A DNA stretch of 64,000 bases from Magallana gigas (taxonomy: Eukaryota). The stretch spans positions 9,176,001 to 9,240,000 of the forward strand of contig NC_088854.1 of the NCBI RefSeq assembly GCF_963853765.1, in the 5' to 3' direction. The notes under the pieces were generated by a model. That model ran no database searches and was not told where the DNA came from. It worked only from the letters and a program-made list of their open reading frames with translations. The translations under genes and the position numbers were made by a program. Of this stretch, positions 57,351-64,000 are shown piece after piece (within the stretch, counting starts at the first letter, position 1; each line of letters opens with the position of its first letter).

Positions 57351-58165
57351 GTCTGTCTCAAGATATTGATGATTTATGAAGCACATTTGGATAATTTTTA
57401 AGAAAAAATACCTATGAAAAAAGTGCAATTGAAATTTATGATAGGGACAATATCCAAGATATCTTCATTGACACATGATCAGTTTTCAGTCGAACGAAAA
57501 CAGATTAATTTCTTATGGAGTTTTATAATGGTAAATGCTTACACCTTTTCTCCATTCGGAAGTCACTTTGAATACCTCGCACAATTTTTCAAAGTTATCA
57601 CCCGGGTACTTTTATCTCTTTTGCAATGCGAAATTCCCGTAGACTTTTTATTTTTATAATAGTCGTGTAGTGAAACCCGACAAGCTGGAGGGAGCGTTTC
57701 AAAGTAAAATCTTGATATTTTTTCAAACTATGGAATTATAATCCATATCGTTACATCGTTAACAGGTTAAAATCCAGGACTGCGTTTTCCAAAAGAACTT
57801 ATGACAAAGTCATAAATATTTTCAGTTTCATGGAATAAACTTGAAAGAACAATACACGGCTAAAAAATGTGATGTCTACGGGGATTTTGTATTGCAGCAG
57901 ACCCGGATTATAACGTTGGAAAATTGTACGAGGTATTTCGAGTGACTTCCGAATGGAGAAAAGATAGAAACAATCCCCATTATAAATCTCCGTAAGAAAT
58001 CTGTTTTCGTTCCCGTTAACTTTTATGAGTGAAAAATGATAATGTGTCAATGAAATTATCTTGGACATTTTCCCTTTCATCGATTTCAATTGCACTTCTT
58101 TCACAGGTATGTGTATTTTTATTAAAAATCGGCCAAATGTGCTGCATAAATATCTTGGGACAGCC
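57351..58165. mobile_element. non-autonomous DNA transposon with ~130-bp TIRs
   Basis: 57351-57480 is the inverted copy of 58035-58165. The TIR is shared with the elements at 22158-22915. Confidence 0.8.
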
Positions 58166-58378
58166 AGGCTTATAGTGAGCAACTGAGCGAATCATACTTC
58201 CCGCAAAACTTGCAGATCGCCCGAGGACTTCCGAGAGAAGCAGGAACTCAATGACTGAAAGTTGCGTCACGTGGCCTTTGTATTTACAAACACTAACGTT
58301 AGTGCTTATGATGTTTCCGTGTAAGAAAAGATAAAACGCTAAAAACACTCGTCTAATGTGCCGGTTCAATCACTGAAC

Positions 58379-58597
58379 ATGGCACTGAAAGACACAATCA
58401 TTCTGTGGAATGACGGTGTAAATCTATATCTTGAAGAGGAATTTGAAGAAGCTATTTCGAAATTTAAACAAATCGAGAACCCGAATGCTCGTGTTCTATA
58501 CAACGTCGCCTTTTCTTACCTCCAATTGGACAGACTAGATGATGCATTAAAGGTAAGGTTAAATTAATTTGTTTTTTGGTTAATTAAACAGGTGAAA

Positions 58598-58634
<37 letters not shown>

Positions 58635-61600
58635 AACAATGTAATACGCAAGTTTAATCTATAACAAGAAATCAAATGACCTGCCGTACCTTGTTGCAAA
58701 AGGTCCTTTGAATCATGGTATCTTTATAAAATGAAAATGTTAGGAGGTATATGTATTTTAACAATTTGATCTGGACCTACTTGGATCAAGTTCTAAAACA
58801 CTTAATTATGTATCTTGACCATTAGGTTGCTAATGGTTATACCTCCTATACCTCCTGCATACACACGTCTATTAATAAAAAATCCCCAACAGATATGGTT
58901 AGTTCTAACTTTGCAAAAAAAAGTGGAGGGGATAAATACACCCCACCCCTACACATCTGCAATATCTACAAGGTCATCTTGACTTACAAAAAAGATATTA
59001 CACTAACCCATACATACTCAGCATCATAATGAGTACAAAATCTGTTTCTTTACAATAAAATTAGTTATCTGAGTTTCTAAAATTTGGGAAGTGAACGCTG
59101 GAGGCCAGGGGTTTTGATGGTAGGACAGTCAATTTTCTCCAATGATTTAAATATTAATTCATTAAGAACATCATTGCATATGGCCATGCATGCAACTCAC
59201 TAGAACCAATCACCTATCTATGCATATATGTATATTTGTCATCATGCAGTGTATAGCTAAGTACATTAACTTGTCACATTTCAGCCAGCTGAAAAACTGT
59301 ACATGTATATACTTAATAAACATGTGCAGGTAATTGCAAACTGCATATGTACAATGCTGTGGAATATCTATTAAGCTGTATAGTAATGAAGTTGTTAATT
59401 TTCGGTTTGAATTGCTTGATATGATAAAGCTTTGAATAGTTTTTAAGTACAAGATCTCTCACGATCCAGTGAACAACTTTTCTAGTTATAACACCAGGAA
59501 ATTTTTAACTACAAACATGAAGGATATGTAAAGTTAATATAGATAATTACTCATGACACGAGAAAAAAGATAAAGATTTGCCATTAGGGCATACACACAA
59601 GCTAATTAGAACTTGTTTTTTTTTTCAGTTTCTTTACTACTGCGCAAAACATGCATTACCTAAAAATAATGTATTGGCATTTAAGAGAAAAAAACCCTAT
59701 GTATAACTTAATTTTACACATATCATCTTAATATAATTTGATGTGTATTTACATGCAGTGCAGTGTATATATAAGGGTCATAAAGCATATACTGCCAGCT
59801 AGGGTATTTGTTGTAAAATACTGGAATAAAATGTGTTATCATCTACCATTACCTTTACACATTTAGGACTAAATGCATGTAATTACATGTATATACACTC
59901 ACAATCATATAGCTTATATTTTACATAAACATTAAATTTACCAGGACTTGTGTATTTATATTCATTCCCTTGATGGACTAAAGTGCAAGGTATATTTACA
60001 AGTCATAAAAATGATATCTAACTTTATTATTTTCAAGATTAATCTGTATCAATGATTTTCCTTATAAATTGGTACTAATTAATATTTGTTGGTAAATGTC
60101 GCATGTACCCGGTAATATATACCGGTAAATGATATTGATAAAAGATTCAGTGTATAGTGACAGAATTACCGTAAGCCTCATAGTGTCTATTGTCTGACTT
60201 CATCTTAGTGTATATGACCACTGTATCCTGATTGACATAATGAATCTTCCTATATTGCAGTAAACATTGTTAATCATCATATACTTCCTTTTTATCACTA
60301 ATACTGGTACAACAAAACTAATGTTTGATACGTAGCTACTACAATAAAACTTCCAAAACATCTCCTTTGTTATAAAAGCTAGGTTTTAACAGGTATCCTC
60401 AATAATCAAGTTTATTAAATTCTAGCAGGTGTTGAGGGCAAGCTTTATAAGAATTTCATCAGGTTGAATAAAATCTAAGAGAAAGTACTGTCCCTTCTTT
60501 TAATTATGGTATATATATGCATAATTTCCTTCTCGAACTTTGCAATCTTTCAGTCAGAAGGGGAAGTTATCCGGCTAGAGGGCATCGGTTGGTTTTATTA
60601 AAAGTTTGCAGTATGCACAATTGCAAATATGCCAAAATCAGAAACATTGAGTTAAAAGATGATTCTTAATTTCTTTCAGTTATATTAAGGAAGTCTTTCA
60701 GAGCAATGATCATGCAGTTAGATAGATAAAATATTTTCAATTAAATATAAACTGATGTAAAACCCAACCCCCAAAATGTAGAAAGAGCCTGGAGTGAGAA
60801 AGCAATATCAGGGCATGCAAAATAATATTGTATCTAATAGAATGTAGAAATATTAAAGTTTTGTTGAACTTGTTGAGTTTTTTAATTCTGTAGAATCTGA
60901 AGGAGACAGTACAGAAAGATCAGCACCTAGCCATTGCCCATTTCTGTTCAGGACTTGTAGAGGCCAAGCTTCGCAGGTAGGAATATACCTAATTAGTACA
61001 TTGAATATTTTTTAATGATTTTGAAAAGAAATTACTGTACAATGCAATTACTTCACAGCTGTGATATTTAGTTTTCTTTCATTAAAAAAAATATAAATAC
61101 ACATGTATATATACATGCGCAAGTACCGGGTAGTACAACCATATTTGATGAGTTCCATAGCAGATAAATGTATTGATGTTTATCTTGTTTCAGGTACAGA
61201 GAGGCTATATCTGATTTTGACAAAGCTGTGGAGAAATTACGGTCAGCAACCTTCATAGACTACACCCAGCTGGGGATGGGATATAAGCTGATGCTCTCAG
61301 AGGTAACCATGACCTTGTACTATTAAAGTGAAAGGTCAAGGACATTGACAGCATAAAATCACAATGTCTTGGCCACAGGGCCAAGCCGGTTTTAACATTA
61401 ATTTCAATGTAACCATAAATTGAAATTAATGTTAAAACGGGCTTGGCCCCTGTGGTCTTGGCAGAGAAAATTATTTTCAACAAAAGATTAGGATTGAACA
61501 AATTATGATAATAATTATAGATTACTATGAAGTAATTGTTAATCTTTAAGTCAGTTTACTTTATAACAAAATGGGTTACATGTCACAACACATGCAATAT

Positions 61601-63344
61601 TTATGTTTTGAAAATTAATATTTAAAAAACAAGAATAATACTGTAAAATTAAACAGGCATTAAAATACATTGATCTTGATGAAAATAAATAGATCAGTAT
61701 TAAATGTAAGTCACTGATATTTGATCTAAATTATGTTAGATATGGGTTGCCAAGGCGACTGCCATGACAATGATGGGGCGGGGAGAGGATGCTGAGGAGT
61801 TTCTGATCGCTGCAAGTCAACAGGAAGATGATGAAACAACCAGAAAGAACTGTATTCTTGGTCTACAAAAACTACAGGTTTGTAGGAAGTGGTTTCACCT
61901 CAGTAACTAGGGCAGGCTTTGTCTTTGTTCAGATAGAAGGATGGTAATTAAAACAAAAGTACAGTTCAACTCGTTTAGTAAGCTCAACCTTAATTTATCT
62001 ATAGCGACAGCACAGATATAACAGTATTTTAGTTAAAATACCATGTATTGTTTTACACTTTAAATAAATTTTGATGAAACAATGAAATTTATGGATCTAT
62101 AAATTAAGTATCTAATTTCATGTCTTTAACCAGGAAAGGAAGTCGGACGTTACAGCATTAAAGAGACGACTCTCTCTAAAAAGTCAGAATTGGTTTCATG
62201 GTCAGTTATCGAGGCAGGAGGCAGAAGCTTTGCTGCGCAATCAAGGGGATTTCCTGGTCAGAGAGAGCCTGCGGAAAAAGACTAATGAAATCCAGTATGT
62301 TTTGTCAGTTCTATGGCAGAACAATAGGCACATTCTTATCGTACAAGATCAGGAGGTAAGACTCTCCGAATGAAATTAATTTCTTTACTTACAAATATGT
62401 GCCATCCTCCCCTTCATACTCAGTTGAATGCCAGTTGGTGTTTGGTCAATCACAATTAGGTCAAAGGTCAAACTATTTTAGACATATCATCTGCTAACCA
62501 TCTTGGGAACCATTTGCTTGCCTCCTCAGTACATTGTGAAATAATTTACTAAGTAATTCAATTTCAGTTGCCACATGTAGGGCATAAATTTGTTTCTTAA
62601 AACATATATTGGTAATAATCTTGTTTCATCACAATTCCACTTACACTAGTAATGAGAAACATGTGATAAATGCAGGTTGGGTTAATTATGTTAAAAGTAC
62701 AGATATGTACTTATGACAATTTTGTACTTCATTAGATATAGCTATAAATCTGATGATATTATCTAGTTGGTACTCTGGTGTAGCTGGTACTTCCTGGTAG
62801 ATGACTGGTCAAATCTTTCAATACAAACTTATTACCCTCACTCAAATTTAAATAATTCCCATCAATACAAACCTTCATTACCCTGATTAATATTAGATAT
62901 TTCCTATATAATTGCAGCTATCTATTTTGTAAATTCTAACCTATCAACCACACTTTTTACAGAAATGCATAGTTTTTAAATTTAATAGTAAATGGGATGT
63001 AAACTACATGTATCAAAATGAACAGAACGACAATACAGGGGTATATATGTATACTTTGAGTAGGTTTCTGAGATTTTTAAGTACTGTAGAACCTATGTGT
63101 ATATATGTAAGAATAATGTTAAAGTAATTGTATGTATTCATGTGACCCACATAATATGTCTCTTTTATTTGAGCTCTCTGCTATCTCAATTGGACAGGGT
63201 TACTGGAAGTTTGAGGGCTTCTCTTTCCCTACCATTCAAGAACTTGTAGAATACCAACACAGCAGTGGTAAACCAGTGACCAAGCGGTCCGGGGCGCTCC
63301 TCAAAACCCCCATCAGCCAATCAAGACAACCAAAGATGGCAGAG
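58379..63344 (+). CDS. p67phox/NOXA1-like TPR domain fused to a Fer/Fes-type SH2 domain (probably continues beyond the window)
   Basis: Exons 58379-58552, 60894-60976, 61194-61302, 61740-61877, 62134-62355 and 63198-63344, all GT-AG and in frame. TPR part: MALKDTIILWNDGV..., KDQHLA, LRSATFIDYTQLG. SH2 part: WFHGQLSRQEAEALL, GDFLVRES, YVLSV, FEGFSFPTIQELV, VTKRSG. Confidence 0.85.
58602..58632. repeat. (CT)n microsatellite
   Basis: Uninterrupted CT run in intron 1. Confidence 0.97.
61374..61454. mobile_element. 81-bp palindromic hAT-like MITE with 8-bp TSD
   Basis: CA...TG termini, ~35-bp arms and a 10-nt loop. GTCTTGGC at 61366-61373 and 61455-61462. Confidence 0.8.
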
Positions 63345-63519
63345 GTTGGTGCAGAAATATACACTCTACTCTTAAAGGAAGGTTAAAGTGTTTTGTGAGA
63401 GCAATTTAAATGTACTTGCTAAAGTGCATATATAAATGATAAGATATTTAGTCTAAAGCTCATAGAGAACGTATTAACACAACTGTTGTTGAATTGCCTA
63501 GTATCTGAAATATACACGT

Positions 63520-63600
63520 TATGATCAACTGCAAACAAAGTTTAGGGGTATGTTAGAATAACCTTGTCCATTTATCTGTTTTCCTGTCCATGACTTAAAT
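63520..63600 (+). mobile_element. degenerate 5' end of a HINE related to 13472-14420
   Basis: CTGCAAACAAAG...GGGGTAT...ACCTTGTCCATTTATCTG. Confidence 0.5.
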
Positions 63601-64000
63601 TTTTTTCAGACATGATTTAAAATCAAAGTACCGAGAGTACTGAAAGACGGGGTCTTGAAAGTGTCCTTGATTTCCTCGAATATGCTTCCAAAAATTATGA
63701 GTTTGAATAAGTTGTTTTAATCTATTTAATTCGGCTTTTTTGCAATTGTCTGATACTTTGTCTAAAGTTTACTCAATCCCGGCCTTCATAATTGTAGAAA
63801 ATTGACACAACAGTATTTTATGTAAAATTTAAAAATTACTACTAACCGGGAAAATCAAAACAACTATATCAAGGTAGATAATTTAAATCATTAGATTTAT
63901 TTAATTCTGTGATCCAAGGGAAAATCCACAAGTCGGACGGTATCCGTTATATATGAAACCTCAAAAACGCTCAAACTGCTGGATTACTAAACAAAGTGAA

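Follow-up and report, generated by a model that had tools for sequence, protein, structure and literature searches.

p67phox (NCF2) is the cytosolic activator in which the TPR and activation domains make up the "Nox-activating region", which acts together with Rac; Asp-67 and Arg-102 are Rac-binding residues of this protein, and Val-204 is crucial for Nox2 activation (PMC2121648). The SH3/PB1 layout is not universal to the family, since fungal NoxR and a p67-like protein of Lottia also deviate from it (PMC2121648). In oysters, p67phox is the only cytosolic phox component to have been reported, in the form of a 185-aa fragment, and p47phox and p40phox were not found (PMC4892480). The gene analysed here, LOC105348235 of Magallana gigas, begins in a 64,000-nt stretch of DNA (contig NC_088854.1, positions 9,176,001 to 9,240,000 of the forward strand; hereafter the window). 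With a probability of roughly 0.78, it encodes an oyster-lineage p67phox/NCF2 into which Fer-derived SH2 exons have been inserted, and which would work as a Rac-dependent Nox2 activator with an additional phosphotyrosine-dependent step.

The gene and its full-length product

Six coding exons, every border of which is GT..AG, were delineated on the + strand between 58379 and 63344 of the window (Table 1). Once spliced, they give a 291-aa frame, which is preceded by in-frame stops 5' of the ATG, as read from the window sequence, and runs on to 63344 without meeting a stop codon. This product is identical to residues 1-291 of the 522-aa protein XP_011455864.3, encoded by the eight coding exons of LOC105348235. 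The two remaining exons were located past the window end on the oyster contig OY970746.1 of GCA_963853765.1 (L001 in Table 1), which matches the window over 5622/5622 nt, and a six-frame reading of 63345-64000 revealed no coding sequence. The modules of the complete protein follow one another in the order TPR, basic linker, SH2, groove segment with activation domain, and Pro/Tyr-rich tail; the tail is disordered and Pro/Ser-rich and ends at residue 522 with the C-terminus RPAAPTRPPPPRRN.

A preliminary description of this DNA had joined a p67phox/NOXA1-type TPR domain to a Fer/Fes-type SH2 domain in a single gene and had considered that a kinase domain might follow. The presence of both domains in one mRNA is borne out by the exon model, the domain matches and the RNA contigs described below. 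The kinase, in contrast, did not materialize: only two further exons follow, and neither a kinase (PK_Tyr) nor an FCH domain is detected by Pfam in XP_011455864.3.

The NCBI entry bears the name "uncharacterized protein" and the UniProt entry A0A8W8KP19 that of "SH2 domain-containing protein". Counterparts are found in Ostrea edulis (LOC130051746, 510/511 aa) and in Saccostrea echinata (515 aa, SH2 at the same position), the latter recovered when exon 5 was run with phmmer against the whole library, and Logan contains many full-length products derived from RNA, 522 or 529 aa in length. The literature search retrieved no publication mentioning the locus or accession, or describing an SH2 domain in any Nox activator. 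The earlier assertion that no protein of this architecture had been described thus holds for publications but not for the databases, and what is new is an SH2 variant of the known p67phox family, the gene model of which is catalogued but unnamed. By its TPR domain, Rac-contact residues, activation domain and gene structure, LOC105348235 is the predicted oyster orthologue of p67phox/NCF2, a member of the p67phox/NOXA1 family, and should be recognized as such in annotation instead of remaining "uncharacterized" or "SH2 domain-containing".

Insertion of the SH2 exons

The position of the SH2 domain becomes clear when the gene is compared with its scallop counterparts. The coding exons of the three oyster genera are nearly equal in length (in nt, M. 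gigas: 174/83/109/138/222/147/102/591; Saccostrea: 174/83/109/138/222/141/102/576; Ostrea: 174/83/109/138/222/141/102/564), and those of the scallop Ylistrum (XP_060066004.1) measure 162/83/109/138/114/597 nt; according to exact splice mapping, the intron phases are identical in all four. Since the scallop gene has the same exon plan minus the two phase-0 SH2 exons, the SH2 domain is best read as an insertion between the TPR and activation domains and not as a replacement of the C-terminus. The SH2 exon pair (369 nt, phase 0/0) falls within a single phase-0 intron of the scallop gene, and no SH2 coding sequence is present anywhere in the 16-kb scallop locus. In agreement with this, the scallop proteins annotated as "neutrophil cytosol factor 2-like" (Ylistrum, Pecten maximus and Mizuhopecten yessoensis; 401-414 aa) have the groove segment and activation domain immediately behind the TPR domain. 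In the protein alignment (A1), the oyster linker and SH2 form a clean block of ~120 columns that has no counterpart in the four scallop sequences and the single amphioxus sequence compared; after it, F305, P307, N314, Y320, K323, V326 and S328 are invariant.

The exon shuffling suggested in the preliminary description is therefore upheld as to its place, the ancestral phase-0 intron after exon 4, where the scallop has the same 138-nt exon and the same intron without SH2 exons. It is not upheld as a switch away from p67phox, because the groove segment and activation domain follow on exon 7. Intron 4 would accordingly be what is left, on the upstream side, of the ancestral intron that received the SH2 exons. 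SH3 and PB1 domains are undetected by Pfam in the oyster and scallop proteins, and both are detected in an amphioxus NCF2-like protein; as the SH2-less scallop orthologues also lack them, their absence seems to be the bivalve ground state and not a result of the fusion.

The sequences compared come from four oysters on one side and, on the other, from three named scallop species and one scallop-like transcript (P0186). The searches with the TPR region and with the scallop protein returned 4 and 7 proteins, respectively, through a word index which is insensitive at 30-40% identity and which likewise limits the view of mussels, pearl oysters and gastropods. The ratios of nonsynonymous to synonymous substitution rates (dN/dS) among Magallana, Saccostrea and Ostrea, calculated by the Nei-Gojobori method and approximate because dS exceeds 1, amount to about 0.06 for the TPR domain, 0.10-0.12 for the SH2 domain, 0.03-0.10 (the lowest in the gene) for the groove/activation domain exon and 0.13-0.18 for the tail. 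The SH2 domain is under purifying selection in oysters.

Source of the SH2 domain

Exons 5 and 6 together are recognized as an SH2 domain by Pfam (1.4e-16), as is exon 5 alone, and exon 6 matches only the C-terminal SH2 halves of FER and FES. The best solved relatives of the whole domain are FER (1.6e-18) and FES, ahead of SHC, with 39-42% identity to the human FER/FES structures; the SH2 domain of a scallop Fer-like kinase is closer still (61% identity, E 9e-38). Foldseek searches with the structure model place the Fes/Fer SH2 domains next after p67phox (TMt 0.86-0.88). The WFHG motif, the alphaA arginine (SRQE), the betaB5 arginine (FLVRES) and the betaD histidine are all encoded by exon 5, both arginines having been pointed out before, and the phosphotyrosine-pocket arginines and betaD histidine are kept in 4/4 oyster sequences. 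Judged by these residues, the domain is complete, with the features of a functional phosphotyrosine binder.

The nearest non-orthologous fragment (P0004) resides on a contig (L003) in which it is preceded by Fer-like coiled-coil exons and followed by tyrosine-kinase exons. In L003, as in a dozen Fer-type open reading frame (ORF) fragments from other animals, the first SH2 exon stops on the very codon position at which oyster exon 5 gives way to exon 6; the position of the Fer intron was read from L003 and genomic ORF fragments. The second SH2 exon of Fer genes runs on into the N-lobe of the kinase, whereas that of the oyster gene stops 8-10 codons past the SH2 domain. Since the internal intron is retained, a duplication of two Fer exons at the DNA level is favoured over retroposition, and the sequence evidence as a whole points to a Fer-type kinase gene as the source. 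Both exons needed for a complete SH2 domain would thus have been copied from a Fer-type tyrosine-kinase gene in the oyster lineage. Among the tyrosine-kinase subfamilies of C. gigas, none is more expanded than FER (PMC4883820). The case illustrates exon shuffling in nature with unusual clarity: Fer can be named as the donor family, the intron that received the exons and the preserved intron between them can both be pointed out, and the scallops provide a sister lineage without the SH2.

Two sequences met in these searches deserve mention in their own right. L003 is a metagenome contig of the Joint Genome Institute (13.7 kb, GC 0.38) that carries a eukaryotic Fer-like kinase gene with coiled-coil, SH2 and tyrosine-kinase exons. 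P0002, an animal protein of 687 aa, has an unusual multi-SH2 architecture, in which a tyrosine kinase domain comes after four Fer-type SH2 domains in tandem.

In all oysters, a motif ALKRR(L/H)SL (RRxS; window 62155-62175, aa 176-182) is found in the linker between the TPR and SH2 domains, and it may plausibly represent a site for a Ser kinase or for 14-3-3. In SH2 domains the two termini are close neighbours on the side facing away from the phosphotyrosine pocket, which allows such a domain to be placed within a linker without parting its flanks.

Transcription and splicing

RNA was mapped on 58001-64000 from the contig sets X4, X5 and X12 (three studies) and one sampled raw-read polyA run, X21. 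All five exon joints, with their GT..AG ends, are present in contigs of X4, X5 and X12, and the RNA word depth reaches ~90-190 at the joints vs ~5-20 in the introns. The contigs start at ~58299-58312 (X5 record 14 at 58299, X12 record 1 at 58312). The joint 61877>62134, which links the TPR domain to the SH2 exons and had been singled out in the preliminary description as the one to be looked for in RNA, was seen in all three contig sets; X12 record 5, a 556-nt contig over exons 3-4-5, flanks it with 137 and 223 nt. X4 record 10 and X5 record 17 run through exons 5 and 6 and then ~1060-1080 nt past exon 6. In X21, three of the joints are covered by 2 reads each, and the exon 4>5 and exon 1>2 joints by 0 reads; because of this, the exon 4>5 joint rests on the assembled contigs and the full-length RNA-derived products.

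The SH2 exons might be viewed as an alternatively spliced cassette, in which case the main working protein would be SH2-less and scallop-like and the SH2 form regulated or minor. A pair of exons with 369 nt and phase 0/0 can indeed be skipped in frame; besides, contigs drop rare variants, and the mapped stretch ended before exon 7, so that a joint of exon 4 to exon 7 was out of view. Nevertheless, exon 4 is joined to exon 5 in all RNA contigs of the three studies, the SH2 domain is contained in all full-length Logan products read and in all NCBI isoforms of Magallana and Ostrea, no product without PF00017 appeared among the 4 proteins of the TPR-region search with its insensitive index, and the domain is subject to purifying selection. 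A cassette of this kind seems extremely improbable.

Table 1. Positions of the exons and other parts of LOC105348235, numbered from the first letter of the window unless L001 is given.
Feature	Position	Strand	Length and content
5' untranslated region	58299..58378	+	short upstream ORFs and in-frame stop 5' of ATG
Coding exon 1	58379..58552	+	174 nt, aa 1-58; TPR1 and start of TPR2, p67phox-type
Coding exon 2	60894..60976	+	83 nt, aa 59-86; carries the D67 equivalent
Coding exon 3	61194..61302	+	109 nt, aa 86-122; TPR3 and p67phox-typical beta-hairpin insertion
Coding exon 4	61740..61877	+	138 nt, aa 123-168; TPR4 and capping helix
Intron 4	61878..62133	+	256 nt, phase 0; scallop intron at same codon position
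Coding exon 5	62134..62355	+	222 nt, aa 169-242; basic linker and N-terminal SH2 half
Linker part of exon 5	62134-62187	+	basic, conserved RRxSL motif
Coding exon 6	63198..63344	+	147 nt, aa 243-291; C-terminal SH2 half to ~63320, then short spacer
Intron 6, first 656 nt	63345..64000	+	full intron 2382 nt
Exon 7	L001 11349-11450, 1727 nt past window end		102 nt; groove segment and activation domain
Exon 8	L001 11685-12275, 2063 nt past window end		591 nt; tail

The window has a GC content of ~0.33, as in AT-rich animal DNA, and several repeats surround or interrupt the gene. A hairpin in intron 3 (61378-61449; 34-nt arms, 94% complementary, 4-nt loop) shows an RNA word depth ~10x that of the flanking exons, with many loose ends, and looks like a dispersed element of the miniature inverted-repeat transposable element (MITE) type that is transcribed elsewhere. 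Dispersed repeats with a word depth in the thousands in 4/4 RNA runs occupy 58001-58200, upstream of the gene, and 63600-64000, in intron 6, and are probably transposon families. About 400 nt before the transcription start, two inverted arms (57508-57607 and 57901-58000; 100 nt, 83% complementary, 293 nt apart) may belong to a foldback or MITE-type element. Intron 1 contains a (CT)n microsatellite (58608-58633) at which mapped reads appear cut. The next gene downstream of LOC105348235 (L001 14289-16278) is TTLL11-like, of the tubulin tyrosine ligase family.

TPR domain, activation domain and tail

The TPR region is collinear with that of human p67phox from the initiator Met onwards: exon 1 aligns with residues 1-56 and exon 3 with residues 89-120, and residues 1-152 as a whole match p67phox 1-152 (1hh8) with an E-value of 7e-21 (phmmer). 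Exon 4 alone finds no match in the PDB and was assigned only within the whole TPR context. Foldseek ranks the Rac/p67phox complex 1e96_B first among the relatives of the model, with 1wm5, 1hh8 and 8wej_D also among the top matches. The nearest cluster in the ESM Atlas is "NADPH oxidase activator 1" at 0.84, which is a lead only, and no cluster combining TPR and SH2 was found in that comparison.

As had been claimed from the sequence before, the HMMER alignment pairs the Rac-contact residues D67, R102 and D108 with D, R and D of the oyster protein and shows Ala in place of S37 and N104. The D67 equivalent (GAT, codon 60918-60920) is an invariant column in A1; the equivalents of R102 and D108 are encoded by CGG (61240-61242) and GAC (61258-61260), and R38 is retained in exon 1. 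In the same alignment, the column of the Rac-critical Arg-102 holds His in the scallop NCF2-like proteins, which have an Arg two residues further on; oysters keep the Arg.

Downstream of the SH2 domain, the sequence 'QAPELNELPDSCIFHPSKDLLKNVDKRNYLGKAKVISSLGQ' was aligned by HMMER to p67phox 177-208 as a second collinear stretch, which in p67phox comprises the segment lying in the groove of the TPR domain and the activation domain. The corresponding segment of exon 7, 'LPDSCIFHPSKDLLKNVDKRNYLGKAKVISS', spans residues 299-330, including YLGKAxV, and aligns Val-204 of human p67phox with V326, a column which is invariant in oysters, scallops and amphioxus. Collinearity and conservation across bivalves and amphioxus are the grounds on which the activation domain was assigned. 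Because it follows the SH2 domain just outside the window, the conclusion drawn earlier, that the protein is unable to activate Nox and might serve as a decoy, has lost its premise.

That conclusion belonged to a view of the protein as a Rac-GTP-to-phosphotyrosine adaptor or decoy, or as a Rac-gated Fer-like kinase. Within the window, the TPR domain does lead straight into the SH2 domain, with no activation domain, SH3 or PB1 visible, and the SH2 domain is of the Fer type, the subfamily so much expanded in C. gigas (PMC4883820). Yet the full-length protein has no kinase domain, by which that part is refuted, and the exon with the Val-204 equivalent is the most constrained in the gene, which makes this view very unlikely.

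Three motifs of the tail, FYSRRPPPALP, AEYE(E/S)EP and (M/I)YVNT (residues 404-466, exon 8), occur in 4/4 oysters and are absent from the scallop tails; the lineage in which these tyrosine motifs originated appears to be the one that also gained the SH2 domain. AEYEEEP resembles the Fer SH2 ligand DEpYENVD named in the title of 6kc4, a crystal structure of human Fer SH2, and YVNT is of the Grb2 type.

Structure models

In the first AlphaFold run, with a 9-row multiple sequence alignment, the predicted local distance difference test (pLDDT) score was ~50 for the SH2 domain and 79 for the groove/activation domain segment. The addition of Fer-type SH2 rows in the second run brought the scores to 84-94 for the TPR domain and 84-95 for the SH2 domain (residues 181-280), with the linker at low confidence. 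As the two models disagree on the activation domain segment, docking of this segment into the TPR groove is not established, and the relative arrangement of the domains is settled by neither of these predictions.

Proposed function

The retention of the D67, R102, D108 and Val-204 equivalents suggests that the oyster protein would still be a Rac-dependent activator of Nox2, to which the SH2 domain would add phosphotyrosine control over recruitment or activity. Such control might take two forms, which are not exclusive. The SH2 domain could dock on a tyrosine-phosphorylated partner at the membrane and so do part of the job of the organizer p47phox; alternatively, an intramolecular switch could result from its binding to the tyrosines peculiar to the oyster tail (AEYEEEP, YVNT). 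The RRxSL motif of the linker suggests an additional input from a Ser kinase. The more specific proposition, that the SH2 domain takes over the organizer role of p47phox and that the tail tyrosines latch it over the activation domain, is tentative and rather doubtful.

Several points weigh against a Rac-dependent Nox2 activator with an SH2 insertion, in addition to the in-frame SH2 exon pair and the exon 4>5 joint left empty in X21. The activation domain is matched over no more than 32 aa (conditional E 2.9e-4), a similarity that by itself does not reach significance against the whole PDB, and its segment scores 79 in one AlphaFold model and <40 in the other. Two residues of the Rac interface, S37 and N104, are both Ala in the oyster. 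The insensitive word index also limits the search for an SH2-less oyster NCF2 paralogue or a p47phox-like gene. Finally, Rac binding, Nox activation and phosphotyrosine binding are all deduced from conserved residues.

The bivalve family of TPR, activation domain and proline-rich proteins could also be Rac effectors or scaffolds, e.g. in the phagocytic cup or in cytoskeletal signalling, to which the SH2 domain adds a phosphotyrosine input without any part in Nox activation. This would suit proteins without the SH3 and PB1 domains that tie vertebrate p67phox to p47phox and p40phox, as well as the reported lack of these two partners in oysters (PMC4892480) and the His at the R102 position in scallops. 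Such a role seems unlikely, however, for proteins in which the activation domain motif and its critical valine are invariant from amphioxus to oysters; moreover, Nox2-like and p22phox genes have been reported in oysters and Lottia (PMC4892480, PMC2121648), and the burst of oyster macrophage-like haemocytes is apocynin-sensitive (PMC12064177).

If the oyster protein is indeed an SH2-bearing Nox2 activator, the oxidative burst of oysters may be wired directly to tyrosine-kinase signalling, and a respiratory burst gated by tyrosine kinases would follow a logic of regulation that is not known from any Nox2 system. A phosphotyrosine-reading activator is also a concrete and testable hypothesis for the control of reactive oxygen species in the haemocytes of an aquaculture species with infectious mortality.

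Comparison with known systems

With p67phox/NCF2 and NOXA1, the oyster protein shares the four-TPR N-terminus, collinear from Met1, the beta-hairpin insertion between TPR3 and TPR4, the D67, R102 and D108 residues, the groove segment and the activation domain with its Val-204 equivalent. It differs from them by a 123-aa module of linker and SH2 between the TPR and activation domains, by the absence of SH3 and PB1, by a disordered Pro/Ser-rich tail with conserved tyrosines, and by Ala at S37 and N104. The scallop NCF2-like proteins have the same exon boundaries and phases, the TPR and activation domains, a proline-rich tail ending in RPPxPP and likewise no SH3/PB1; unlike the oyster protein, they have no SH2 exons, carry His at the R102 position and lack FYSRRPPP, AEYEEEP and YVNT in the tail.

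The likeness to the Fes/Fer kinases is confined to the SH2 sequence and to the intron that splits it at the same codon position, whereas the F-BAR and kinase domains are missing and the second SH2 exon extends only slightly past the domain; by these features the oyster protein is not a member of the Fes/Fer family, and only its SH2 domain would derive from there. The resemblance to p47phox and NOXO1 is proposed as a functional analogy only, namely that of a modular domain bringing the activator to the membrane complex upon phosphorylation. The two are not homologous: in p47phox, PX and tandem SH3 domains are released by Ser phosphorylation, whereas in the oyster a predicted phosphotyrosine-binding SH2 domain lies inside the activator itself.

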